DNA from: Klebsormidium nitens
Lineage: Eukaryota > Plantae > Klebsormidiophyceae
Reading direction: 5' to 3'
Assembly: GCA_000708835.1 (NCBI GenBank)
Contig: DF237424.1
Location: 1-64,000, forward strand
DNA length: 64,000 bases
Below are positions 4,001-61,622 of this stretch, in pieces. Both the position numbers and the translations under genes were made by a program. Under the pieces are notes generated by a model. It ran no database searches. It worked only from the letters and a program-made list of their open reading frames with translations, and was not told where the DNA came from. Numbering within the stretch: position 1 is the stretch's first letter; the number at the start of each line of letters is the position of its first letter.

Positions 4001-7000
4001 TGGAAACCGGGGCAAGGCATCTTAGTGCTGCGTAGAAGAGGAGAAGCCTGCACGCATGCGCCAAGCAATTGATGGGTGCACAGTGACCCACCTAAACTCC
4101 GCGTTCCACGCCAGGCCCAGCACCGAGTCGGTATGACTCCCCTCCTTGAGGTTGCGCTGCAGACCACGATGCGACCGCGTCAGTAGGCTCAATTTCGAGA
4201 CTGTTTCCGTCTCACCAGACCTTACGTAGTCGTTGTCTCCAATGATGCAACGGTAGTCTCCTCCTTCCTCATCGAGCCCCAACAGGTGGGAAAATGAACG
4301 ACAATCGCGTTTTGCAGGCATGTTGAGGGTCAGGACCAAAGCGACAGCTGGTTGAGTGCAAGAGTATTCTTCGCAATCTATCCGGACCGATTTCCAATCC
4401 GTAATTTACTTCGAAAAATTGAATAATGTATGAATGGATCAGGGTTCTAAAAGCCCGCACAGCAATCGCGTAGGTCAACAAGAAACCGCACAAACAAAGC
4501 GGGGCAACAGAACCGGATAGTAGGCAGTTGTCGTTTACAGACCGAGGGTAAGCATCCACTGACCCTGCCGGGGGCCATTTGCCCTGCAAACGCTAAAGAT
4601 TGATTCATATACCAAAAGATTTGAACGAGCGACCGTTGACGGCCGCCGAAGGCTCACCTTCTTCTTCTTCTTGCTCTTCTTTTTCTTTTTCCCATCCTCG
4701 CTGGTTGGTTCGTCCTCAGCAGCCGTCCCCTCCTCTTCGTAGCCGCCCAACGTTTGCACGGGCTCGACCGCATCCAGCTGCGGAAGCGACCGGTGTCAAT
4801 AAAAGAATTTGACAAGCTTGAAGGCCTACCACGAGACTCAGTCGCGTGAACTTATGCATCGACCGGCAAGAGGCTGAGGCCACTGCAAATTTTTGCATGC
4901 CTAATCTGAGGAAACCCAACAACCAAAACGAAGCAACGCAAAGTAGCACCAAAAAGAGGATGTGACCCCTACACCAACCAAGGAGGTCGACCCAAACAAG
5001 AAAGCCTAAACCGCTCACCCATACAACTTGTTCAAACTACTTCCTAGAAGTCGACTCGCTCAGATCCCTGACAGACCTTCATCCGCCTTCCTCAAAGCTA
5101 GTCTGACCATAACCGCTTTCTCCTGGGCAGAAGGATCATCCGCCGTCTCGCCTCAACAGGCAGCCAGACCGTTCAGCAAACCCAAGGGTTCTTACCACGT
5201 CCAAGTCCCAGATCTCAATCTCCGGCATGAGCGTCCCAACAGCCACCATGTTGCCTGCAAGACGATCGGCAATTGCTTGTCAGCCGGAATGCGCACTAGC
5301 GCCATTGAGGCGTCGCACAACAGCCTCAGGATGCACTGAAACAGAAACAAAAGGAAAGTTCGACCGCCTCTTCTCTGACACTCAAGCACGGTACCAGAAC
5401 AAGAAGTTCCCTGACTTACTTCCCCTTCCAGATGACTCTACTCTTTAGCTGTGGCAGACATACAATTCCGACTCACTCACATCGCACTCGTTCCAAAAAG
5501 GTACTTCCAACAGCAAGTGCTCCAAAGTCGTCCCATCGAATCAACCCGGTGGATCCGACCCGTATGTTACTAACAAGTATCGGAGCAGGGCCTAGGCCCA
5601 CCTTTACTGGCGGCCGGGTCTGCAGCAGTGGCAGCCGGGTTGCAGTCCATCCAGGCGAGCGCAAGGGGAAAGGCGGGCAGCATGATGTCATGGTGCACGT
5701 ACAGGTTGTCGAACTCGTCGCCCTGCGCCTCCTCGTACACCCACACCTGGCAAAGCGGGAATGATGCTATTGCGACAAACGTGCGTTCTTCCAAACTACT
5801 GGTACGACATCCAACGGTCACGGAAAGATGGGGACTACGTACTTCGTCGCTGCAAAGCTGAGCATCTTCGTATAGGCGGAACCGCCTGCTGTGGTGAAAA
5901 GTACGAGGTTTGCCAGGACTTTGAAACAAGATCAACAGTATCATACTTTTGATTGGAGTGATTCAATAAATCGATCACGAAGCTCCGATCAGAACGACTG
6001 AGAAGGCCAAACGTTATGCTCGAGCGATAGGACGTGAACTGGCCTTCGCCCTACCTCAATGTTGCTGACGTCATCCTCGTTGCGTGCTGTCAGCAGCAGC
6101 AGATCCGAGTCCCGAATGGTAAAGTCGTCGATCTCCTCTGAATCATCGTCCTGCACGGAGGGGAGCAGCAGCCTCGATACGTCAACTGGCAGCGGCTCTC
6201 TGCTTCTTCGGTATACTGGTACGTAAGTACTCCACCAGACACTAGATACATGGCTAGATTAGAGCGTCCGGACTCTACAAGTCACGAGCCGTTGAACCCA
6301 AGACCTCACGTCCCGTTTCGGGGAGCAGGATTCTGATGCGGTTGTTTGTTTTGAAGCTCTGCATTCGCGAGGGGAAGGCCGCCGTCGACTATGTCTAGCG
6401 ATCCAAAACGAGTGTCATCCACCGACACGGGTGCTCTGCTCCCAACGAGCCCGGCAGATTACAGTGTTGCATTGCTCCGCTTCTTACATCTAGACCGCAG
6501 AAGCGCGAAATGGCCTGAAAACGGCCACAAACCACAGCGCTGCCGCTGTTTGATGATGTCGAGAAGTGAACGCTTTAGATTGAGATCGTTTTCGCTAAGT
6601 TTGTAACAAAATCAGGTAGTAAACCTCTTCGTGGAGATAACTTGCGTTCCCCGGACTAAAGCTTGCAAACTTAGACCTTACATCGGACGTTTGCGCTGCG
6701 ACGTCAAGCATTGCAGGATTTCCAACCGTCTTGTATTCCAAAGCATACCTGATGTTTCCAGACTAGCTTTGGTAAACTAGGCGGTGTGCATCTGATTCTA
6801 CATGCTCTTCTGTGCAGAAACGAGCCCAACAGGACTTTCGAGTGAGTGACTGACTAGTCGTCAAGATCGCTTGACTAGCACATCATTTCTTTAATGGAGG
6901 CAAGCACACTTTCAATGCCTTCCAATCTGAAAACGCAACTTACAGAAGAAAGGCAGGAAGAATGCGTACCCCTTTTAAGGTGATGTAAGGATCGTCTTCG

Positions 7001-8397
7001 CTGCTGATGTACTGTGCATTGCCCAGGCCCCCGTTGCCAAAGAGCCGCTCGGTGTCTGCAAAGTTGCGGAAAGGGACCCAAGACATTAGGAGGAGAACGT
7101 CTTTTCCAACGAAGTCCCTCTCGACCAAACCGTTAATTTCTTCGAAATCAAATGAACTTGAACCTTCAAGAAGCTTTCATAACAAGCAGCTAATACCAAG
7201 TTCACCTTGACAATATAGAACCTTGGGGCGACTCCTCGAGGGAGGATTTGTGTCACTGCTTACAGTTGTGGCGGCAACACTATGCAGCAAGTCTCAGCCC
7301 AAATCGCCCCGCTTTTATCGTGTCCATCATAGCTTGGACTTTCCGAGGGAAGTGACAATCTCAATCCGCAAAACACCCTTCCCCTATCCTTTGCCCCAGT
7401 CCCAATCTTCCCCCGCTCTCACCTGCCTGCTCGTCCTCCTGGTCATAGTTGTCCATATCTAGTTCTGCCAGGCCAGCCGCCAGTGCATCGGTGCTTTTTT
7501 TGGCCGCGCGCTTGCCCTTTCCTCCCCCAAGAGCGGCCGCCACCGCCCTTGCCTGCTCTGCGGGGTCAGCTTCCTCCTCCATGCCCCCTTCTTCCTCCTC
7601 CTCATTTTCGTCATCTTCCTCCCACTCATCCTCTTCATCGCTGTACAGAAATTCGAATTTCACCAAGGATGAGAATTAGGGTTTCAGGAACAGAGTCGTG
7701 ATGGGTCGGTGGTGCACCACATTAGCATCACACCACCACCATCAAAGGTGTCAGATTAGGGTTAGGGTTAAGAAGCCCCAAGACCTCGCAAAAGAAACCT
7801 GCTTTGAGCTATGAGGAATGTACAGCCCAACAAATTCCTGGGTACGTCACGAAGGTTACGCTCTGCTATTTTCCAAAAATCTGACGCCTGAAGATGTGTA
7901 AAGCTGCAGCCTACAAAAAACAAAACTTCGACTCTTAACAACATTGAAAGCTCAACTGGACTCTGGTAATGGTGCACCAATCAGGTGCCATCACAGCATT
8001 GCTCAAGATTGCTTAATAAGAAGTAAAACATTTCTTCTACAATACTTGGAGTGCCACCAGCTTCTATAAAATCAGCTTTCAAGTAGGATTCCGAATGCAC
8101 AAGGCAGGACGCTGAGAGCAGCAGTTTCCATGTGAATGCCCCTTATGCTGTGAACGAAGGTAGAAGTGACAGCTATGCAATGCCGCCTTCCTGCAACATC
8201 CGCGTCACAAAAGCAGTACGAAGCGCCGCTTGCGATGCTAAGTCGGCTAACCTGCTATCCTCGTCACCCTCGCCCCTGGTTTCCTGTGCTTTCAGTGCGG
8301 CTGCCTTCATAGCCTCAAGCTCCTCCTCAGTAGGGTCCACCGTGATGGGCGTTGTCTTTGCAGCGCCCTTGGGCACCCAGCACACTGAGCTGATCAT
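1085..8397 (-). CDS. PWP1: Periodic tryptophan protein 1 (WD40 ribosome-biogenesis/chromatin factor), 14 exons
   Basis: Start MISSVCWVPKGAAK (ATG 8397) matches the PWP1 N-terminus. It is followed by an acidic exon (7423-7640) and exons encoding DDFTIRDSDLLLLTARNEDDVSNIE, VWVYEE..LYVHHDIMLPAFPLALAWMD, GNMVAVGTLMPEIEIWDLDV, SHTDSVLGLAWN, NVLASCSADTTIKAWD, VQTVVWNPAEPTVLLSGGFD, FLATGSTDKMVKLWD and GAVFSVSF, ending AEIEED* at 1085. Introns are GT-AG. Confidence 0.95.
7676..7770 (-). promoter_or_regulatory. Telo-box (AAACCCTAA, 7676-7684) and (TTAGGG)2.5 tract (7756-7770) in PWP1 intron 1
   Basis: The plus strand reads ttagggttt at 7676-7684 and ttagggttagggtta at 7756-7770. Function is inferred only from land-plant telo-box precedent. 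Confidence 0.35.
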
Positions 8398-8952
8398 GAT
8401 GCTGGCTGGTTTGACAAATTTATGCAGCAAGAGTGGTGTTCCACCGCAAAGCAGAAGTTCTAGAAGAAAGAAAGACAAACCAATGGGTTTGTTCCTGCGC
8501 ACCAGGATTTCTGTTCGTCACCAAGAAAATGCAGATGCGTCCTACGTTTCAACTTTCACGTTGCATGCTCTGAGTCTGACTTCTGAAAAGATGCAGCTCA
8601 ACCTTTAACTCTTGCAACCATTTTTGAACTTGTTCAATGTCCGCCGCCGCAAGGCCTCCATCACGAGACTTTGCATCAGGGGCTATCAGTATATCCTGTG
8701 GAGGCCCTGTAGACAAGCACTTTCTCGGTAATGGTTTTGCTTCCCTAGAACTTTCCAGAGAATCTCTCTAGCTGTGCAATTCTGCATCCTCTTCCAATTT
8801 CAGCACAGGCGCTCCAACAAAGCAACAACAAGCTGCAACGAAATCCGCTTTTGCCACATTCCAAGCCGAAGCGCCCCCCAAAAGTAGAACGCATACTCTG
8901 AAGCCAGCGTCTTCCTGACGACTCTTCGTCAAGTTGCTCGAACAGCGTCAGA
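8398..8952. promoter_or_regulatory. Putative bidirectional promoter, PWP1/CPN20
   Basis: Divergent start codons are 555 bp apart. Confidence 0.55.
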
Positions 8953-11300
8953 ATGGCGTGCATTGCGGCTCTGCAGAGTGCGGGAGTGGTTATGCAGAAG
9001 TCTTTGACCACCTTGCCAGCGTGCTCCTCTACCAACATCAGGAGCTTTGCGGCCTTCACTGGCCTGAGAAAGGACCCTTTTGCTGCCACATCACGGGCCT
9101 CAGCGAGGACTGTGCACAGGCGGCAGTCTGGGGTGCGAGCGTCTACAGCAGTGAGCACCAAGGTGAGCTTGCAGAGGATGTTTTAAGGGCTTGACGAATG
9201 CCGTGTATCTGTAATATTAGGATCCGTAGCACTCTTCAATTGTCTCGAGAAGCATGAGCTGAAATTTTCACGAAAAATTCATGATTGCAGTCGCTGACAA
9301 GAAGAATAAAAATGCATATTGCACACAATGCAAAGTTCCTCTAGGAACATCCTGCAAAGGGCGGGTAGAAGTGATGGTACTCCAGAGGCCATCAGCACTT
9401 GCATCGCATGTGCTATATCCTACCGGAGGCTGTGTCAACCTTTACCAAGAGCGGCTGCTACATGTGCTGAACCCTGACTTCAGATGCCGCGCTTTGCCTT
9501 CTCGGGTTGATTGAATGAACACTTTATACTGCGCACAATCTGCAGTTCACAACTATCAAGCCTGTGGGGGACCGCATTCTGGTGAAGAAAGAGAAGGCTC
9601 AGGAGAAGACCAGTGGTGGCATTCTGCTCCCGTCCACAGCACAGAACAAGCCTACTTCTGGTTCAGTTGTGGCACTTGGCGAGGGGAAAACTCTGCCAAA
9701 TGGAAAGAAGATTGAAGTTGGGCTTTCGGTAAGTTGCCCGAGCATGTTCTGTTCACAATGATGTCAATGCCAACCTAGGGATTTACTCCTGATCTATGTG
9801 ACTGGTTGGAGCCTTTTGCAAATCTTCATTGGACGAGTTACCAAAGCTGTTGTGAGCCATCGCCATGAAGTCAGTTCAGATTCAAACGACGACCACCTTT
9901 GATCGCCAATTGAGGCAAAAAACACCGGTTGCAAGTGCGGTTCACACATTTCAACGTCGGAGAATATCCGTGGCTGTTTCCACATCCTGGCTGGCATGCG
10001 CCGTAACAGTTCGTTTTCTGCACTCCACTCCCAGCCAATCAAGGCTTGCCTTAGCTGAAAGGCATCAATGTGCTGGTGCAGACTGGCAGCAAGGTAATCT
10101 ACTCCAGATATGCGGGTACCGAGGTTGAGTTCCAGGGAGAGGAGCACCTCATCCTGAAGGAGGAAGATGTGATTGGGCTGTTGGACTCAGATGATGTGAA
10201 GGACATGAAGCCCCTCGGAGATAGAGTTCTGATTAAGGTAAGTGATTTCTCAGTTCGACGCGGACTAATCCCGTGTTTCCTAGTGGCCACTGCCGTTTGA
10301 TTGGAGGAAACTTACTTTCAATGTAAACTTGGGAAGTCGAGATTGCAGCTGTCACAACAAGCAAGGTTGCTCTCTGAGTGCCGCCTGTCTTTCTCAAAAC
10401 ACGTTGACAAGGAACTGTGTCTTTCATAGCGGTTGTTCTGGCGGTTCTCGTGTATGGATGTGGAAGCGCCTCTCTTTCACATATGGAAAAGGAAGTCTCA
10501 ATCACATGAGATTGCATGAGTTTCGACAGCTTTGTGCACATACTAGCGGTCTAGTTTGAAGCTACGTTGCTAGGTCAAGGGTGATTTACGAAGCCGTTAT
10601 TGAAGCGAAGATAGTAAGTCACATGTGTAACTCTTCCTGCTCTGGTCGACAGGTAGCTGCTGCTGAGGAGAAGACCCAGGGGGGGATCATCTTGACGGAT
10701 AGCACAAAAGAAAAGCCAGTTATTGGAACGGTGAGCCATGCACCTTAATGTGAATGCTTGAATGTCTTCCACTTTTGGCCGACTACTGATTGGAAAGCTT
10801 CCCAACCGTCTCTCTGGAAAGCTTCCTAACCGTTTGCTCAAGTTTGGAATGCTTTTGTAGACCATAGTCGTCCTGGAATTCTGAATTTTGTCCAACAAGC
10901 ATAGTTACATCTGTTTCTGAACGACTTCTCGCATCGGGAAACGGCCTCTGGCGTAGTCGGTTTCACGTTTTTGGGGTCTCTAGACATGCCTGTATCAGTT
11001 GTGCCGATTACAAGTATGGCGAAGGTCTTGCAGCGTTCTGTCTCCGTCATCAGGATTCCAGACTCAAAAGGTCTCTTCTGTTGGTGGGAGCATACAATAT
11101 CAAGTCGCTCGCTTTTGCTCTGTTAGGTTGCCGCTGCGGGACCCGGCCCCCTCGACGAGGAGGGCAACAGGAAGGGCCTTGATCTGAAGGAGGGCAGCAC
11201 AGTTCTCTACTCGAAGTACGCCGGCACCGAGATGAAGGGCAAAGACGACTCCGCTTATGTCGTTATGAGAGCACAAGACGTCCTTGCTGTGCTCTCATAA
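8953..11300 (+). CDS. CPN20: Chloroplast 20 kDa co-chaperonin (tandem GroES domains) with transit peptide, 5 exons, ~266 aa
   Basis: Exons 8953-9162, 9546-9728, 10082-10237, 10653-10730 and 11127-11300 are all phase 0. There are two GroES repeats (IKPVGDRILVK..TSGGILLP..; MKPLGDRVLIK..TQGGIILT..; YSRYAGTE / YSKYAGTE), and exon 1 is S/A/T/R-rich like a transit peptide. Confidence 0.96.
10791..10833. repeat. 24-bp tandem duplication in CPN20 intron 4
   Basis: tggaaagcttcccaaccgt.. recurs at 10815 as tggaaagcttcctaaccgt. Confidence 0.8.
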
Positions 11301-12218: not shown

Positions 12219-15200
12219 CTACGTCACAGTCATAGATGAGCCATTGTCATTGACATTGATGCTCAGAATCAGGTCTGCGGCGTCCCGTGACCTGCATGAC
12301 AAGCAAAAGCATGACTCCTCAGGAACACACTAGCAGTATGACGTTCGTTAAGATTTGCAATCTAAAGAAAATGTGGCTCCTTGGTGGCAGTTGCTTTTGC
12401 GTGCAAGCTCAAAACAGGGCCTTGCGGAAGCTGAATGTCAGGCGTGAATTTCAAAGCTCGACAAATCGATTGACTGTCCACTCTCCGGCCAACCTTTCTC
12501 TCATACCCGGGCGCTGCTCTTCCTTTTGTGTGCGTTCCCGAAACACAGATATGCGGGTTACATGCTGGATTCCGAATGCGATCCCAAATCCGCGCAGAGA
12601 TCGGGGCAGAAATTCGTGGGAGTGAGGCAGATTCAAGAGAAATCTAGGAAATAGCCGCATTCTGAAGCCTGACTTGCTGAAAGACGCCTATTTCGGATAG
12701 TCCGTCCTGAAACTGTCGCCTCAGAACCTCGTCAAGCGAACGAACCGAGCTAAAAGCCGGGTCTGAGTCAAGGTTCTTACCACGTGTCCGGTGTCTGGTA
12801 CATGGACGCGGACGATCCGAAGCAGGACTGCAGCATGTCCGTGTTGATGACCCCCGGGTTCAGAGCCACTGCTATGCAGCCACGTGGCAGCTCCCGGGCC
12901 AAGGAGCGGGACATGCCCTCGACGCCCCACTTGGTGGTGCAGTACGGAGCAACCTGCGGTGAAAGTCGGAGCAGTGTTCAAGAAGGGTTCAGGGTAATTC
13001 CTGTCAAACTTCGACCGTTGATTAGGGTGCAAGTATCAGACATGGAAAGCTTTCTGGCTGCGGATCAGCCGTCCGAATCCAAATAGACGACGAAGGGTGG
13101 CCGTCGTGAGCGCCCTACCTTCAACGTATCAAATTGACGTATCAAACTCCAAAAAGCCAACCGCTGGTTTTTGCTGGTGAGCCTTACTAGCGGACCGCAT
13201 GCTGACGAAGTAGGACCACGGGAGAGGTTCGAAAGGCAGGCACTTTCAAATCGATCGACGGGAGAGCTTGGTGTGCAAGGGGAGGGCTTCCAAAGAAAAG
13301 AGAGGGTGGTCGGGTTCGCAGAGGAGTAAACGAACGTCCCTTTGCCGAGGGGTCCTTCAGTGAGGGTCCTGACTAGCTCAGGCCACCTTCTGAAAGAGCG
13401 CTTCAGTAGTCGAAAGCGCTCCACAAACGCAAACTACACGCTACAGACCAAGTCTAGCGTTGCTTGGAGCATCAACAGAGTCGTCAACAATTTCTCGAGC
13501 TCAGAGACGGAACTGTGATTCAACCCGCCGACTAGAAGCGGCGAGCATAAGAAGGAAGGTGGCTCTAATAAGGACTTGGTTCCCATGCCACTTACGTCTG
13601 GCGCTGCGCTCCGGCCCCACCCCGACGACATGTTTACAATGACGCCCTTCTGCTTCGCGACCATGTGAGGAACAAAGTGCCTGAAAGCGGAGACAAGCAA
13701 CGAGATCGTTTGAATTGCTTTTGTAAATCTTCAAAGTTTGCAAGATTGTTTGAATTGCTTTTGTAGATCTTCAGAGTGTGCATCTTCGGACAAATCTCCT
13801 GTGTCACCAGATTGTCAACAGCTTGAACGGCCAAGGACATACTCGGGCACCTTACCCTCGCACCCAAGATGATGCACGGCCAGTCTGCAATTCAAAAGGT
13901 GCGAAGCTTGCGGAAGTCGACGTTATATCCAAGTCCCGGCCTTTGTGGGAGCTATCGAACCATCCGTGGAAAGGAACATCTTGGGTGCGAGACTAAGGGG
14001 GCCCGAGATAGGATTCTATCTCACCGTTTCTCATAGACTGCATCTACTGTGCTCCAGCTGAGTGCTGATCTGACCTGGCTTTTAATAATCACAGTCGAAA
14101 TGAGCATCTGCACAGGGGGCTCGTCGAACTACGGAGGCCATTGGGGCTGCCAAAGCATTGGGGCCTTATTTCGTTTGCAGGACTGCGAAACGTCAGGGTT
14201 GACAGCACACAGTCTTCGCCTCTCCACCGAGCTTATCACAAGACGAAACCGTTCTGACGCCCTTTATTCATGATTTCCAGACAGCTACCGCTTTGGCTTG
14301 AAGAATCGGTTCACGGGCGACATACCTGATAACGTTGGCCGTCCCTTTTATGTTGACGTCAATGACCGCATCAAACTCCTCAACGGGTACCTCCCACAGC
14401 GGTGCGTTCTTGTTGATGAGCCCAGCGTTATTTACTGCAGGCGACCCACGTACATCAAATGAAACGCCTGCGCTTTGATTGTGGGCCAAAAAGCAATCCC
14501 ACGTGTAGTTACGTTTTAATACAGAGTCGAATGAGAAACGGATGGGAGAAAAAAGGGGTTCTCACCAAGGATGTCTGGAACTCCGAACCTTTCGACAGTG
14601 GCGTCGGCCCAGCTCTTCACCTCCTTGTCGGCCGCCTACATGAAAACGCTGGATTGCGTTCAGGATTCTCCCACTGTTCCTTGTCAATGAGTAGGGCTGT
14701 CGAAAGGAGCCAATCAGCATACGGAGAATGATACCGACGCCCTTGCTTCGAAGTTGGGCGCTGCAGGCTTTCAAAGGGGGGACGCAATTTTCGAGGTGGT
14801 GACTATCCGACGACTTGCGGCAGATTGCACATCAAACAGACCGGACGTCTTCTGACAGGACAGCAACTTGTTAGGCAACTTACCACATCCACCGCTGAAA
14901 ACGAGTGTCGATCACCTAGCCTGTCCGCAAGTTCTTTCACAGCTGCTTCCGATCGTGCACAACCTTGAAGGGGAGGAGTTGCGTACATCAGTGCATTGGA
15001 AAGCTTGCGTTCTCTAGCGGCTCAAAAGCACATAGATTCAATGTCCTGGCCCTTCTCAAATCGATGCAAGCAAATTTGCATTGCAGGTTGTGAAGCCCAA
15101 CTCTGTTAAGGATTGCACTGGACGGAGGGGAAGCCTGCCATAACACCGTGATATCTTTGGAGGTTGATAAGGAATTTGTGACGGAACATCCTGATTGGTT

Positions 15201-16193
15201 CCCTTGGAGAGCCTCACCTACGACAGTGTGTCCCCGAGACGCAAGTTCCACCGCCAACGATTGGCCCTGCCCATGTCAGAATACAAGTGCCAATGTTTAC
15301 AGAAGACAAGGTGGAAAAAATTTTGTGTGCAAAGAGAAGATATGATGATCATGTTGTCTCCACGACAGCATTCGTTCTATCCCAGACCCTTGCAGCTGCT
15401 CTAGTACAAAAGTCCCATGACACACATGATGTGATTGAGCAGGGTCAGAATTTTGGTCACATGATGGTTCTTATGCTGATCGTTGAGCGTCATTGCGGGG
15501 TGTAGCAAACCAAGCCTTGAGGGGCCTAAGAGCTTCAGGTAGAGGACCACTCACCAGGCCCTTGCTCACCCCCGTCACAACAATAACCTTACCTGGGCAA
15601 TGTAATCGCGTCAATGAGAAGATGCATACCCAGGTGCAGGAAACGAAGGCATCAAGCCCCAAGGGCCTGGCTAGTGCTCAAACATGCTTTCAAAATACAT
15701 GATTGTACAGGCGCAATGCATTGCGCTCTTCACTTGAATTGGGCAAGCATGGTCAAGCTGAACTCTCAGTTTAAGGCATGCTACTGACTCCGTTCTCGAA
15801 GACTTTATATTCCTGCCTTGTTGAGTCCTCACCATCTTGCGGAGTGTCGCCCCCAGCCCCCATGCTTCGGGCCAGTGGCGGTCTCCGGCCCCCTTGCGTG
15901 AATTGCCAATTTCCTCCGGTAAGACCCTTTGAAGAGAACAATTGGCTACAGGTACGCAGCCCTAGGTCTCCTAAACACGGCTCAGAAGCATTTGAGCATG
16001 CATAGCCAGCATAAGACAGCTGCCTGCGGCGTATGGATGATGACAGGAGTACCGATTCTACGGAGCGAAAGCAGCTTACTGTGTGGCAAGATTTTGCTTC
16101 CAAACAGGGGGCTTCCCTCTTCGTTAAGCGGGGGCAGAATGCTGACCCCAGCTGCGATCTCAAAGGCGAATGAGCCGCCTTTGCTGCGGCCAT
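12219..16193 (-). CDS. Short-chain dehydrogenase/reductase, NADPH-dependent pterin aldehyde reductase-like (At1g10310 family); alternative start at 15863
   Basis: Spliced exons give KVIVVTGVSKGLGQSLAVELASRGHTVVGCARS (TGxxxGxG), VNNAGLINKNAPLWEV, IVNMSSGWGRS and VAPYCTTKWGVEG (YxxxK), then LNPGVINTDML and a last exon ..NDNGSSMTVT* at 12219. The first exon is open from an in-frame ATG at 16193 through ATG 15863 to the donor after 15833. Confidence 0.9.
13703..13782. repeat. 40-bp tandem duplication in SDR intron
   Basis: agatcgtttgaattgcttttgtaaatcttcaaagtttgca followed by agattgtttgaattgcttttgtagatcttcagagtgtgca. Confidence 0.85.
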
Positions 16194-16787
16194 GGTCCCA
16201 TTGCAATTTGAATGCGGTCCTCTTGTCTCGTGACTCAGAGCTCTGTGAAGTCCACACCATTTCTACCTAATAAACCTTTTTTGGGGGGCGCAACACGGCC
16301 AGCACTGCGATACCGTATGTACTCCTCGATAAATGTCTCGGTCAAGGACACTCCAAGTTACCGTAGACCAGACTTGCACAAACCCCCGTTTGAATTGTTC
16401 CACAGGGCCACATCGAACTCCGTCGATCGCCTCATGCGGGCCGCGGAAGCAGCTTTTGGTTCGACATCGAATCTAAACTAGAAACCCCGATTTCTGAACC
16501 ACATTTTAACCCGGCAAGGAGAAGTGCTGTTAACAAAACCTGCAATGAAGGAGACGAAGCGGGCGTATATTGAACTTGAAGCGCAGCTGAAGCCTGAGCT
16601 GTCCTAGCCTGATTGCCAGCTGAAGTCTGCCAGTGCAAGGACGATCTCCACAATCTAGCGCCCTGGTTGCTGCTTTGCCACTGTGTCTCCAAGCAGCAGC
16701 TCGCAAAGCATTTGTACGCTCTTGAAACACTCAGCTGGTTGCTTGCACTCTCCAATCGCCTCGTGCGCATCGGCAGACTCAGTCAAG

Positions 16788-19444
<2,657 letters not shown>

Positions 19445-24656: not shown

Positions 24657-25360
24657 NNNNNNNNNNNNNNNNNNNNNNNNNNNNNNNNNNNNNNNNNNNN
24701 NNNNNNNNNNNNNNNNNNNNNNNNNNNNNNNNNNNNNNNNNNNNNNNNNNNNNNNNNNNNNNNNNNNNNNNNNNNNNNNNNNNNNNNNNNNNNNNNNNNN
24801 NNNNNNNNNNNNNNNNNNNNNNNNNNNNNNNNNNNNNNNNNNNNNNNNNNNNNNNNNNNNNNNNNNNNNNNNNNNNNNNNNNNNNNNNNNNNNNNNNNNN
24901 NNNNNNNNNNNNNNNNNNNNNNNNNNNNNNNNNNNNNNNNNNNNNNNNNNNNNNNNNNNNNNNNNNNNNNNNNNNNNNNNNNNNNNNNNNNNNNNNNNNN
25001 NNNNNNNNNNNNNNNNNNNNNNNNNNNNNNNNNNNNNNNNNNNNNNNNNNNNNNNNNNNNNNNNNNNNNNNNNNNNNNNNNNNNNNNNNNNNNNNNNNNN
25101 NNNNNNNNNNNNNNNNNNNNNNNNNNNNNNNNNNNNNNNNNNNNNNNNNNNNNNNNNNNNNNNNNNNNNNNNNNNNNNNNNNNNNNNNNNNNNNNNNNNN
25201 NNNNNNNNNNNNNNNNNNNNNNNNNNNNNNNNNNNNNNNNNNNNNNNNNNNNNNNNNNNNNNNNNNNNNNNNNNNNNNNNNNNNNNNNNNNNNNNNNNNN
25301 NNNNNNNNNNNNNNNNNNNNNNNNNNNNNNNNNNNNNNNNNNNNNNNNNNNNNNNNNNNA
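24657..25360. other. Assembly gap (704 N)
   Basis: Run of n characters. Confidence 1.
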
Positions 25361-25688: not shown

Positions 25689-28600
25689 ATGGCAGCTGCA
25701 CCAGCTGACATTGGGCGGGGAACGCTGTACGTCTTTGTAGAAGCTGGGAGAGGGGAAGAGCCATTGTGTTTCTCCAATCTGTGCTCGCCGCAGGGTACAA
25801 TCTCCTCCTTGCGTGAAGCCATAGAGGTAAGAAGGCAACCCAGGAGTGGGAAAGTCAATGCGCCAAATGGAGGCCAATGCTGCCACTGTGGTTGACAATG
25901 ATATGGCAGTCTCAGCAGGTCTAGAGTGTAAGCTGCATTGGGATGCGTTTGCAGACTGCTTTATTTTGCAGACTGCTCATTTCCTTTAGCAGGATGCCCC
26001 TTTGTGGAATGCCCCTTTCATGAATGCGGCTAACATTTTGCGTTGCGTTTGCAACGGGAAACACTGCTGACTTTAGCAAACCTTTAAAAGCGTGTCTTGC
26101 TCTCATTATGAACTTTGACTGGGGTCACTTCAGACATGTCCCTTTCGCTGCAGGGACATTCAGTTATCAATGTTAAACTCCTAAGGTACTTGATTCCAAT
26201 GAAGTGCCGCAATCCGTGCAATGCGCTTTCGTCAAATGCAGAAAGTAGCCGCTCCTTATTTGAATGCCCCTTTATCCAATGCAGAGGCAGAGTCGCGACG
26301 CCGGTGTGCTCAAAAGCAAGGAGTGCATTCGGCATCTGAAGCTGGTCTTCCAGAACCACCCCGAGGTGTTGCTGTCCAATGACGATCCGCTGGACATCGT
26401 CTTCACGATCCTCAACGAACACTCTGGAAAGGACTGGCGGCAAACCTTTGCGTCTGGGGTGTGGCCCAGAATCACCGCAGTGGTCAAGAAGAAGAAGAAA
26501 CGAACCCAGGCGGCAAATGTGTCGGGAGCGGAGCACGCAGAAGAGGGTGTGGCAACGCCAGCCAGGGAGGAGGGCGAGACGTCAAGAAAGAGACGCGCAG
26601 AAGGGTCTGCAGACCAGGAAGGTGAGTAGATTGGGAGGAATGAAACAGGACGATTCTGTACATTGAGGCTTCCGCTTTCATCTATCTTGCTGTAATGTAA
26701 GCTGCAAGAACACCAAGACACCTGAGTCCGAAACCTGGTTCTTGAGTACCGAAACCCTCTGAGGGATTAGTTGGTCAGGCGGCAAATGCTTGAGTTTCTT
26801 AAGGGCTTTGAAAGCTCACGAGAAAGGGCGCCCTGGTTGCTGTTGCTTTTTGTAGAGCTTGTCATTTAGGGAGCTGTCAGGATTGGGTTTCTTGGATCAG
26901 CAGAATGAAAATGGATCAGCAAATGTCAGCGCAAGCTCCTCAGGATCCTAGTATAAAATAGGTGTCGTTCTGGCACAGCAATCAACTTATGAGAACGCAC
27001 TGTACCAGGGACGCACTGACAACCTCAATCTGGTTGTCAAACAGTTTCCATCAATCCCTGCAGGTGATCCTCAGAAGACACAGAAGCGTGGGGCTGGCGA
27101 CACTGCCAGGAGCCGGCGTCCTTCAGTTCCGAGCGCGGCTGCAGATCAGGCCGGTCCCAGTGGTTCTGCTCCAGGCACCTCCTTGGATGAGATGCCCACT
27201 GCGCGGCTGGGCAGCAATCCCAGCAGTGAGGAACGGGGAGCCGCCACGGTTCAGCAAATCAAGAGCGAGCGCGGGTCGAAGGAAAGAGGGGCGACCTCTG
27301 GGAAGGAAGCAGAGAGTGAAGGGGTCAGCCAGAGGGGGAGGGAGGCGAGGAGTGCGCGCAAAGAGACGACGACAGGGAAGGTGCAAAAGCATGGGGGCTC
27401 AGAAGCGAGCGAGGCCACGATGAGGAGAGGCGACCAGATAGGTGGCGTAGATCGGAGGCCAGGGCAGGTAATGGGAGATGAAGGGAGAACTGCCTTTGGC
27501 AGAGACGAGCAAAGGAGGGGTGCGGACGAAATCGTTGAACGTGGCCGGGGATCGCGAAGCGGCACTGGACGGGAGAGGGAGCAGATTGGAGGTGCTGAGA
27601 CACGTGGTCAGAAGGAAGTGCAGAGAATGAAGGCAGAAGAAAGTGCGTTGATTGGCCGCAGGGGATTGCCGGCAAAGGGTGCGGTTGGAAAGGAGCCGGC
27701 CTTCCGGAAGGAGGGGCCGGCTACAGGAGGGGCCAGGCAACCGGGGCCTCCTGGTGATAACATAGAGGGGGCGCCGACCGTGCGTAAGAGCAAGCGGCGA
27801 GCCCTGACAAACTACCAAATGAGTGACTCGGAGGACGAAGCTGGTCCGAGTCTGGCAGAGCGCGCCTCTGGCGTGAGAGTCAATGCTGTGCTAGGGAAGG
27901 CGGGAGGGCCTCGAGCGGTCGGCAGGAGCAGCGGATGCAGCTTGGAGGGTGTGAGTGGGGGTTCCAACGGGCGCGCTGCCTCAGGGGAGCTGTCAAGAGG
28001 AAACCGGAGTAAAAGGAACCCTCTCAGTGGTAAGGGGGAACGGGTTGGGGCGACAGTGGAGGCTGGCAGCAAGGAGTCGGCAGGGGGGTCGTGTACGGCG
28101 CGCGGCTCTAAGAAGCCTGCCGATGCAAGGCAAGCGAAGCGCTGCAACGCCTGTGAGGATGCGGACAACCCGGAGCTTATGCTGGTCTGTGCCAGAGACG
28201 GCTGTCGGACGGCGCAGCACATTTACTGTCATAGCGAGGATCTAGAGGAGGTGCCGAAGGGGGACTGGTTCTGCTCCGTGGGCTGCGAAACGAAGGCGGG
28301 AGAGAGAAGGGGCGGACCGTGGGAGGTCGTTGGGCGACCGGTATGCAGCGTGCCAGGCTGTTTGAAAAATGCGTACTATGGGTACAGAGAAGCTGGGCTC
28401 ATTGTGAGGGAACGATGCGGGGAACACAAACGGTTGGGCATGCAGCAGGCAGGGGGGAACGTGTGCGAAATCCTGGGGTGCCATACACAAGCACATTTCG
28501 CAAATCGAGAAGCTGTCCGGAGATGGCGCTGCGCAAAGCATCGGGAGGTAGGCATGGAGGCCACGTTCACATGTGACGTTTCTGGGTGTCCTATCACGCC

Positions 28601-28814
28601 AACCTGGCGGTCCATAGAGTCAAAAGGGCGGCGTTGCACAGCACACAAGCTGCCTGGGATGACGCCAAACGACTGCTGCAAGACCAACGGTTGCAGCCGA
28701 CGAGCTACCTTCTACTACTCAGGGGAGGCGCGGTCCGCTTGCCAACACCATGCTCGACCAGGGATGATGTCCAAGAATACAAAGCGAGTCTTGTTGCCTC
28801 GAGATTGCTTGTGA
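25689..28814 (+). CDS. Uncharacterised PHD-finger + four EsV-1-7-type Cys/His repeat protein, 3 exons, ~741 aa
   Basis: Exons 25689-25826 (donor gtaaga), 26285-26621 (donor gtgagt) and 27064-28814 join in frame (2226 nt). A PHD C4HC3 motif lies at 28143-28286 and four CxxxGC..C..H..GM repeats at 28344-28787. Exon 1 is the least certain part. Confidence 0.8.
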
Positions 28815-58802: not shown

Positions 58803-61622
58803 ATGGCGAACTTCTGGCCAGGTCCTGCTGCCCATTTCTCGCCCCAGGGTCCCGTTAGACCTCCAAATTCTCAAAACCCTCAACCCCTAGTTCAGCAGCC
58901 GCCGCAACGTTTCGTGACGTTTCAAGGTCAGGCCCAATCTTCGCTCGGACAGGAACGACTTTTCGGACAGGCGCAGGGCTTTGGTCAGCCGCAGGGTTTC
59001 GGACTGCCCCACGAAACGGGACACGTGGCAGCTTCCGGACATGTGGGCGGTTTTGCGCAACCTCTTGCGTTCGGACAGGGTCTGGGTATTGGACAGGCGG
59101 CATACGGGCAGGTCCAACAAGGCTGCCTCCCGGGGCACTTAACCGGTCACGCCATGCAGGCTCAGCAGACGGGGAAGAACTTCCCTGAGAATCAGTGCGG
59201 GGGTCAATTGCTTGTGGTTAACCCCCTCGCGGTCGCTCAACCGGCCACCCCTAACCACTTTGTTTCGGTCCAGACCGGGACGGTGTTTCCTAACCCTGGC
59301 ACAAACACCCCGGTTCAAAACGCACCTATGCTCGGTAACCCGGGTCAGTTGCTCCAGCTTCAACCGGGGGTGGTGCTCCCCAATCCGGGTCAAGGTCTCC
59401 CGGTCCAAGGGATAAACGTCTTTCCAAACGTGTATCAAGCTTTTGCGGGCCAGGCTCAAACCCCGTTCTCTTTCCCGGTGGCGGGCCCCCGACCTGTGAC
59501 GCCTCCCAATTCTCATCTAGTAGCAGCCTTGGGCAAACCCAGTCCGATTCTCCCCAGTTCGAGTAGCTTCCCCCAGAGGCCAGTCCAGCCGAATAGTCCT
59601 TTCCAGAGAGCTGTCGGGGGGAGCTTCCCGGGGCACGCAACGCCGCAAGAGCAACCCCCCAGCACACTGACAGTCAGACGGCCGTGGCAACAGCGGTGGC
59701 GCGGGATGGGCAAGCAGTGCGAGGAGCCGGGGTGCAACTTCTTTGGGGGACGTAAGACTTTCGATTTCAATCTGGAGGTCTACAATAGAGTCAGAAAGCT
59801 AAAGTTGTTTCTTCGAGTCGAGGTGAAAGAGCGGATAACGCAAGGGAACTGCTAGGCGTGAATGCGCCGCATTTGTAATGCAGAGGCTTGTGTGAAAGCT
59901 TGATTCCACCTGTTCTCAGCACGGGCACTCGGTTGAACAACGAAATACCCAGAAATTTCGCATGAGTTTGAGCGCTGCTCCAAGTGCATTGATCGTTGTC
60001 TCGGTAGCTTAGCTTGGGGAGGTTGTCATTTCTTCGGATTGATTGGCTTTGATTCTAGATGTGGAGGTCCTTTTGTGACGCCATGCACAAAAGAGAGAAT
60101 TGGTCAATAGCCCTTAAGCATGTTTTTGATGCTCTGACATCGTATGGGGTCAAACGAGCGCCTGCCTAATTAAACAGTACCAGCAACTCTCGACTTCGAT
60201 TGCCTGAGAAGGATTGGTCCACTTGGGTGTATTCGAGAATGCGCTTCAAGGCTCTTCTGGACTATTGAAAGTTCTTTTAGTTCAGCTTCAAAACGCCGAC
60301 TTCCTCGATTGCTAGAGTTCGCCATCCAACAATCTTGCAATCAAATAGCCCACTTGTCTTCGATGGCGCTTCGTCAGATTTTAAGCCCGCTCTCTTTCTC
60401 TATCTGCAGGCAAGGCGATGGCCAAGCACCGCTTTCATAACCACGACGAGGTACCGACCCCGCCCAAAGCGCCGGTGAGCAAGGAAGCAGGGGAGAAGGC
60501 GCTCAGGTGGCGGGAGGACCGCAAAAAGTGCTTCCCAACAGGGGCCAATATCCAGAAAAAGGTGAGCGCAGCCTCTGTATCGCACATGAGTCGGTTCCTT
60601 GCAGATTGTACGCGCGCATGAGCCGAACAGGCCAACTTTGAGACCGCTGAAGTCGTTTACGAAAGGGTTAGCAGACGAGGCGCCTTGCAATCAAAAGCTT
60701 GGGCGGAAGGGTTGATCAACTTCGGAGAACTTGGCAGCAGAACCTAAAACTTCGTTGCCACATGCTACAGTTTTAGGTTCTGCAGAGAGCTTTTCAGGGG
60801 ATTCGGAATTCATCATCTCGATCTTAAGACGCCGTCTCGCTACATTACTGTTACATTACATTACTACTTTAACTGTTCTTCGAAGTCGGGATACGAAACC
60901 CTGCAGACCTCGTGTCCTTTCTGTTTTCGTCGTCGCATGCTTGAGCTGCCTCTCGATCGACCAAGCTAGCTAAGCGTCCCCTTAAAACCTTCTTCAGTAT
61001 AAATATCCGATTCAGAGGAACATCCAGACTTTACGAGGAGACACCTTTTTGACACAACCGAAACTGCAAATAAAAGCGGGCCAGCCTCCATGAATGAGGA
61101 GCCGCAACGCCCACTTTTTCAGAGAAGGAAGACGACAAACCGGAAAGACTCCAATACTGTGTAGAAGACGGTCAAGCACTGGGCATCTTCTGCTTTCTGC
61201 AGTTGGCGGAGGGCGCCGCGCGCTTGGCCCGCGGCGAGCTCGACCTGGAAGTCGACAGCCGCAAAAGACGGCGGCACCTGCGGCAGCTGGTCAGCCGGGG
61301 GCAGCAACTGGGCGTTCCGGTGCCCGCAGGGCTGGAGCGTTTCCTCGAGGACGATGCGACCGGGGGAAAGCCCCGAGGCGCGAAAGAAGACCGGGCGGCT
61401 GGCGGTGCGGCCTTGGACTGGGAGACGTTCTTCGGTCGAGTGCTGAAAGCGGAGGAAGGGGCGGAGAACGGTGGGGCGGAGGAGGGGGAGCTAGGAGAAG
61501 AGAGGGAAATGCTGGAGGGGCAGAAAAAGGGGAAAAAGGGCAAGTCGAGCAGGAACAGGAAGACGCGAGAAGCTGCTGACGAGGACGGGAAGCGCGTGCC
61601 AAAGCGGGAAGCAGGCCCGTAG
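58803..61622 (+). CDS. NUFIP1: NUFIP1/Rsa1-like box C/D snoRNP assembly factor with a long Q/G/P-rich N-terminus, 3 exons, ~506 aa
   Basis: Exons 58803-59751, 60410-60561 and 61203-61622 join in phase. The junction rebuilds a C2H2-like finger (CEEPGCNFFGGRKAMAKHRFHNH), followed by the NUFIP1 motif WREDRKKCFPTGANIQKK and the plant-like RRRHLRQLVSRGQQLGV helix. Confidence 0.8.

Follow-up and report, generated by a model that had tools for sequence, protein, structure and literature searches.

The gene KFL_004750060 of Klebsormidium nitens (Streptophyta, Klebsormidiophyceae) encodes a protein in which a PHD finger is followed by a C-terminal array of four EsV-1-7 repeats, a new architecture of known domains that is present in the databases and undescribed in the literature searched. 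The EsV-1-7 family has expanded in brown algae, where it numbers hundreds of genes, among them the genetically defined developmental regulator IMMEDIATE UPRIGHT (IMM), and it occurs widely in giant viruses. KFL_004750060 lies on contig DF237424.1, at 25689..28814 from start to stop codon on the forward strand, within a stretch of 64,000 nucleotides that was analysed as a whole (the window) and whose numbering is that of the database record; all features of the gene given below are on the same strand. With moderate confidence, we propose that KFL_004750060 is a functional nuclear gene whose product acts as a lineage-specific nuclear chromatin adaptor, the lineage-specific part of this proposal being drawn from the best 150 of 1,082 matches to the repeat array. 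A preliminary description, made from the sequence alone, had placed the stretch in a streptophyte, and its source was indeed K. nitens.

The repeat array occupies the C-terminal part of the protein, with unit 1 at residues 586-618 (28344..28442), unit 2 at 626-656 (28464..28556), unit 3 at 662-691 (28572..28661) and unit 4 at 697-726 (28677..28766). The preliminary description had recognized four tandem EsV-1-7 units, and Pfam agrees with it: EsV_1_7_cys (PF19114, IPR043822) matched in four stretches, scoring 64.8 bits for the open reading frame (ORF) and 62.1 bits for the annotated protein (P0001) against a cut-off of 25, and each unit conforms to the motif C-x4-C-x15-18-C-x2-H-x3-G-M. In alignments of 31, 80 and 69 relatives, the Cys, Cys, Cys and His columns show either no variation or a conservation of at least 90%. 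In all six reading frames of the window no further repeat unit was detected, and 30 shuffles of it contained none. No DNA-level tandem repeat was found under the units by Tandem Repeats Finder, and the units are therefore not a recent duplication.

No other Pfam family, including Zf_WRKY19 (PF24906) and other zinc fingers, matched the repeats of P0001 at E<=10, and Zf_WRKY19 did not match the related proteins P0016, P0125 and P0129 at E<=0.01. A WRKY19-type identity of the repeats, which the preliminary description had itself named as the competing assignment, is rejected, considering that neither the window protein nor its paralogues matched that family. Zf_WRKY19 was also matched by 4 of 69 EsV-1-7 relatives (best E 1.9e-9), which suggests, at the level of sequence profiles, that the two Pfam families are related or overlapping.

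A structural model of the array, proposed earlier as a check, was obtained using AlphaFold2 with a 31-row alignment, and the array folds confidently, with a predicted local distance difference test (pLDDT) score of 85-96. No solved homologue of the array was found in the PDB by sequence, and no solved structure matched it significantly by fold, the best match (E 0.25) falling among miscellaneous zinc-binding domains. Against the predicted viral structures of BFVD, by contrast, Foldseek returned 24 matches at E<=1e-3. They include EsV-1-7 itself (Q8QNQ2; E 7.6e-12, probability 1.00), both partners of this comparison being predicted structures, together with EsV-1-115 and proteins of pithovirus, klosneuvirus, faunusvirus, marseillevirus, cedratvirus and Tetraselmis virus 1. 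Several of the giant-virus proteins are named endonuclease or DNA primase, these being database names only. The array is basic, with an isoelectric point (pI) of 9.3 in the window gene and 9.2-9.6 across the arrays of the family. We know of no EsV-1-7 family member with a known biochemical activity, and zinc binding, although proposed for the family, has to our knowledge never been demonstrated.

The array shares with the viral protein EsV-1-7 and with the brown-algal family that includes IMMEDIATE UPRIGHT the repeat unit, the Cys-Cys-Cys-His spacing, the tandem arrangement, a matching predicted fold and the fact that the genes tend to occur in clusters. It differs from them in being short (3-4 units in the Klebsormidium family as opposed to 5-11), in its C-terminal position after a PHD finger and a beta-grasp domain, and in its host, a streptophyte alga, with an identity to any outside member of 36% at most.

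The PHD finger (C4HC3; residues 519-566, 28143..28286) was found by Pfam PF00628 at 32.2 bits, above the cut-off of 24 and exactly where the preliminary description had placed it. Its best sequence match in the PDB was BAZ2A, at E 1e-10 with the single sequence and 1.3e-13 with a profile of seven family copies, and BAZ2B, ATXR5, the first PHD finger (PHD1) of KDM5A/B, WSTF, CHD4, DPF2/3, UHRF1, PHF21A and AIRE were among the further best matches of both searches. The fingers of all these proteins are readers of the unmodified N-terminus of histone H3. ING1, a reader of H3K4me3, matched only at E 4.8e-3. All eight zinc ligands are invariant in the seven family copies, as are an acidic segment before Cys3, which aligns with the BAZ2A finger, and a Trp before Cys7; the aromatic-cage residues were judged from the alignment only. 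Between the last two ligands lie three residues in the window gene and its orthologue (C-x3-C) and two in the paralogues (C-x2-C). The finger thus resembles readers of the unmodified H3 tail (H3K4me0), which is most likely its preference as far as alignments can tell. The C4HC3 ligand set is shared with BAZ2A/BAZ2B (TIP5), ATXR5, KDM5A/B PHD1, CHD4, DPF3, AIRE and PHF21A. Those reader proteins, in turn, have neither EsV-1-7 units nor an N-terminal domain of the kind found here, and KFL_004750060 has no bromodomain, SET, JmjC or ATPase partner.

The preliminary description had read the domain content correctly for the PHD finger and the EsV-1-7 units and had overlooked a putative folded N-terminal domain. 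This domain (residues 12-115, 25722..26491, split by intron 1) is predicted to be of the beta-grasp type, ubiquitin-like or PB1-like, with a pLDDT of 70-91 and the order b-b-a-b-b-a-a-b in a full-length AlphaFold2 model whose alignment has three rows over the domain. All of the 50 top Foldseek matches in the PDB were beta-grasp structures (probability 0.9-1.0, best E 4e-3, template modelling (TM) score up to 0.63, target value), including ubiquitin and ubiquitin-like (UBL) proteins, the PB1 domains of NBR1, MEKK3, Cdc24p and MAP2K5, Ras-association (RA) and Ras-binding (RBD) domains, and talin F0/F1. The order of strands and helices in the model is that of PB1, ubiquitin-like and RA domains; sequence identity to them is 5-18%, and the PB1, UBL and RA subclasses are not separable. 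No relatives outside the family were found by Pfam, by PDB sequence searches (including one with a profile) or by word search, and hence the N-terminal ~105 residues model as a beta-grasp domain without a sequence family. The domain is common to the paralogue P0125 (E 3.4e-16), and exon 2 has 15 positions that are invariant across six family copies.

Between the N-terminal domain and the PHD finger lies a linker predicted to be disordered and rich in G, R, A, S and E (residues 121-514, 26507..28130, including intron 2), with a pLDDT below 50 and a composition, over residues 113-515, of 16% G, 12% R, 12% A, 10% S and 10% E. Its disorder and composition had been described correctly, its length of ~400 residues having been underestimated at ~350. 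The two basic motifs previously noted as resembling nuclear localization signals are present, namely a run of five K followed by R (residues 114-119, 26486..26503), kept as a basic run in the orthologue described below, and a second motif at residues 399-404 (27783..27800); both may serve in nuclear import. A lone predicted helix within the linker (27603-27653, residues 339-355, pLDDT ~80) may represent a short interaction motif.

The gene that encodes this protein consists of three exons, and the model 25689-25826/26285-26621/27064-28814 reproduces P0001 (741 amino acids) residue for residue. Exon 1 (25689..25826) encodes residues 1-46, exon 2 (26285..26621) residues 47-158 and the first base of codon 159, and exon 3 (27064..28814) residues 159-741 and the stop codon. 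The splice junctions suggested earlier, 25826/26285 and 26621/27064, are borne out by this exact translation and by the GT..AG borders of both intron 1 (25827..26284, 458 nt) and intron 2 (26622..27063, 442 nt). Exon 3 contains the longest ORF of the window (27183-28814, 543 amino acids), which holds both the PHD finger and the repeats. GC content is 0.61 in the coding sequence as against 0.47 in the introns.

An orthologue with the same three-exon structure was identified in the Logan assembly SRR23617307, on a contig (L002) that is collinear with the window from 19.5 to 36.7 kb in tblastn and blastn comparisons and that carries, like the window, a cyclophilin gene downstream. Its exons are 74-78%, 70-79% and 52% identical to exons 1, 2 and 3. 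The flanking exons are 80-92% identical between the two at the DNA level and the gene itself ~70-72%, from which it follows that SRR23617307 derives from a related species. The orthologue (6086-7729, +) has three intact EsV-1-7 units. Its frame closes shortly beyond the third, and an intact unit 4 was found in none of the frames further downstream in L002.

More copies emerged when HMMER was run exhaustively with only the array as query, which gave 1,082 representatives at E<=1e-3, none of them above 36-43% identity to the array. Among the best 150 of these, which were examined, a PHD finger directly upstream of a C-terminal array occurs in four: the query, P0125, P0016 and P0129. P0125 is the K. 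nitens protein KFL_003700130 (GAQ87693.1), encoded on contig DF237319.1 (L006), and both P0016 and P0129 come from SRR23617307. Overall, at least seven copies of the PHD finger with the array were found in three genomes, and seven of them align throughout the finger and the repeats. KFL_003700130 has the same N-terminal domain, linker, PHD finger, four-unit array and three exons as the window gene; it is only 30-41% identical to it, has a longer spacer between the PHD finger and the array, and belongs to a cluster of four EsV-1-7 genes, the window gene being solitary. Since P0125 also shares the N-terminal domain, the complete architecture dates back to the ancestor of the family. In terms of sequence relationships, KFL_004750060 is therefore a member of a small conserved multigene family of Klebsormidium-type algae, of which ~5 genes were seen in K. 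nitens. The preliminary description knew of no described architecture combining PHD and EsV-1-7, and none was found in the literature searched either; what does not stand is the implied uniqueness of the fusion.

The cluster on L006 has a collinear counterpart in SRR23617307 (L003), and in each of the two clusters of four EsV-1-7 genes, one gene encodes P0125 or its orthologue and another is a further copy with PHD and EsV-1-7. On L006, the EsV-1-7 coding regions lie at 4583-6790 (-), 8001-11062 (+), 14139-14828 (-) and 17174-17667 (-), at least two of them with a PHD finger. An annotated 547-residue gene there (13338-19013, -) extends over two distinct repeat regions and may be two genes annotated as one. 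Another three-part copy was found on metagenome contigs of JGI (L004 and L005; 3300060285/84). On these contigs (520-9656 of L004, and L005), a Ty1/copia retroelement with gag, integrase and reverse transcriptase stands between an exon resembling the N-terminal domain and an ORF with EsV-1-7 repeats only (P0018), and it may have inserted into an intron of the gene of P0018. Word-indexed protein searches recovered only the query itself with the PHD and repeat region, the method being insensitive and missing the 656-residue paralogue, and only the L002 orthologue with exon 2. A scan of metagenome contigs with the window and L002 as a pair gave 102 pattern matches, none of which was confirmed.

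The window gene and its L002 orthologue were compared by the Nei-Gojobori method. All three exons are open in both species, at a synonymous divergence (dS) of ~0.4-0.9, and the ratio of nonsynonymous to synonymous divergence (dN/dS) is 0.35 for exon 1, 0.22 for exon 2, 0.56 for the linker and 0.21 for the PHD finger, which indicates purifying selection on the N-terminal domain and the PHD finger. The array values come from the shared units 1-3, which have 46% amino acid identity, a proportion of nonsynonymous differences (pN) of 0.35 and a proportion of synonymous differences (pS) of 0.72 that is saturated and gives no reliable dN/dS ratio for the array; for comparison, a neighbouring exon has a pN of 0.06 and a pS of 0.30. 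Judged from this pair, the array evolves faster than any other part of the locus, and little in it is fixed apart from the ligand columns. Its pS (28344-28661 against L002) also stands above the 0.30-0.54 of the rest of the gene and the neighbouring exon, which could be due to a bias of the method at high amino acid divergence, to sequence exchange between paralogous arrays or to turnover of the repeats.

KFL_004750060 is a spliced host gene and not part of a viral island, considering its introns, its ordinary cellular neighbours and the lack of any detected viral hallmark domain among the large ORFs of the window. The neighbours encode a short-chain dehydrogenase, an Arf-type GTPase, PTPLA, a WD40-cyclophilin and a V-ATPase subunit. 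The locus does not qualify as an endogenous giant-virus element (GEVE), that is, an insert of nucleocytoplasmic large DNA virus (NCLDV) origin, in view of its two introns, its host neighbours, its synteny in a second species and the lack of viral domains. A prokaryotic or viral origin of the window as a whole was considered and rejected, the window having spliced genes and no match to any Rfam family. An assembly gap (a run of N) at 24657-25359, 330 bp upstream of the start codon, means that the promoter and 5' untranslated region of KFL_004750060 are partly unassembled and that ORFs spanning the gap are artefacts. The second-longest ORF of the window (58803-59855, +, 350 amino acids) is a low-complexity exon rich in Q, P and G that belongs to an unrelated gene and has no Pfam match. 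The protein of KFL_004750060 is already present in NCBI and UniProt with both Pfam domains precomputed, and so it is unstudied rather than unseen.

Outside Klebsormidium-type algae, the ten best relatives of the array include the brown alga Choristocarpus tenellus and a Faustovirus as well as unnamed proteins, all ~30-36% identical to it. The best outside match (P0002) is encoded on a eukaryote-like contig together with histone H2A and CENP-T. No close relatives were found on IMG/VR viral contigs, whether with the array alone or with the window and L002 as a pair. Among the 149 nearest relatives, taken from the best of the 1,082, all contain EsV_1_7_cys, 143 have no other real domain, and a PHD finger occurs only in three Klebsormidium-type proteins; one of the 149 carries a UCH ubiquitin hydrolase domain (E 1e-55), another a Viral_Rep domain (E 7e-8). 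According to a preprint, none of the EsV-1-7 genes of Ectocarpus has any other Pfam domain (10.64898/2026.04.27.720984), and the EsV-1-7 domain is reported to be absent from land plants (10.1101/2024.02.19.579948).

In the chromatin-adaptor reading, the protein would enter the nucleus, where its PHD finger would bind the N-terminal tail of H3, the unmodified state (H3K4me0) being the likeliest target. One zinc ion is probably bound by the three Cys and one His of every unit in the array, and the basic array may interact with nucleic acid or with another partner on chromatin. The beta-grasp domain, which the flexible linker separates from these modules, would self-associate or recruit another factor, and the whole protein would serve as a chromatin-targeting adaptor. 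Several observations weigh against this proposal. DNA binding by the array is deduced from its charge and from the names of viral partners, and guilt by association is thin with 143 of the 149 closest relatives having no other domain. The PHD finger is modelled only moderately (pLDDT 56-77 in the full-length AlphaFold2 model), and the Foldseek E-values of the N-terminal domain never reach 0.001. Between the two orthologues, the array is just 46% identical and unit 4 is not conserved, a divergence that fits a changing specificity but equally a loosely constrained tail. Moreover, neither the identifier KFL_004750060 nor KFL_003700130 was found in the literature searched.

An account of where the module came from, compatible with the chromatin-adaptor mechanism and not exclusive of it, is that the PHD finger with the EsV-1-7 repeats, or at least the array, was captured from an integrated giant virus (Nucleocytoviricota) in an ancestor of Klebsormidium, domesticated, supplied with introns and duplicated. 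We regard this as possible and yet doubtful. EsV-1-7 units are common in giant viruses, as the 24 structural matches in BFVD illustrate, and one of the ten closest relatives by sequence comes from a Faustovirus; in addition, phycodnavirus-like core genes have been reported in the genomes of Klebsormidium flaccidum (= nitens) and other Klebsormidiophyceae (PMC5294986), and the domain is described as having a patchy distribution and as possibly transferred horizontally (PMC7457493). Nevertheless, the locus has two spliceosomal introns, ordinary host neighbours and synteny across two species, no viral hallmark domain appears in the large ORFs of the window, and no IMG/VR contig carries a close relative. 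The best relatives outside Klebsormidium are brown-algal (Choristocarpus), viral and unnamed eukaryote-like proteins in equal measure, at ~30-36% identity, and no viral relative among the top 150 has a PHD finger. A viral source of the repeat is hence plausible from sequence rather than demonstrated, and these data do not set the direction of transfer; the earlier suggestion that the array is virus-derived finds no support either way, nor does that of an antiviral or developmental module.

The rapid divergence of the array also invites comparison with the tandem zinc-finger repressor families of animals. By this analogy, the protein would belong to a fast-evolving recognition system whose variable array recognizes invading DNA, such as transposons and integrated viruses, with the PHD finger coupling it to chromatin. 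The divergence of the array relative to the neighbouring exon, the unit number that differs between orthologues, the restriction of fixed positions to the ligand columns and the grouping of paralogues in a four-gene EsV-1-7 cluster that is conserved would all be expected of such a system. Against this stand the small size of the family in K. nitens, which has not expanded, and a pN that lies below pS, in a comparison of two orthologous sequences that are too few for a test of positive selection, so that we consider this explanation improbable. Slightly less improbable, in our view, is a broader idea in which the fusion acts as a 'Rosetta stone' for the family: EsV-1-7 arrays, including those of IMMEDIATE UPRIGHT and of giant viruses, would be sequence-specific or structure-specific zinc modules that bind nucleic acid or chromatin, and the fast-evolving Klebsormidium array, wired to a histone reader, would mark or silence certain targets in the genome, for example integrated viruses or transposons. 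It is, finally, very unlikely that the gene model of KFL_004750060 arose as an artefact of annotation or that the locus is a pseudogene in decay, in which case its domains would be real sequence relics and no protein would be made. The assembly gap upstream of the start codon, a protein cluster with one member on one contig and the orthologue without an intact fourth unit would suit such a view. It conflicts with a 2.2-kb frame that has stayed open over three exons in two species at the synonymous divergence given above, with a dN/dS of 0.2-0.35 on the folded domains, with the conserved exon structure and splice sites and with the difference in GC content between coding sequence and introns.

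Nearly all members of the EsV-1-7 family consist of the repeat alone and consequently offer no contextual clue to its function. That the array is joined to a PHD finger resembling readers of unmodified H3, in a conserved family subject to purifying selection, provides a first architectural hint that the repeat may act on chromatin. The four-unit array, compact and confidently folding, should suit structure determination. Its presence in KFL_004750060 and its relatives documents the EsV-1-7 domain in the streptophyte lineage, among the algal relatives of land plants.

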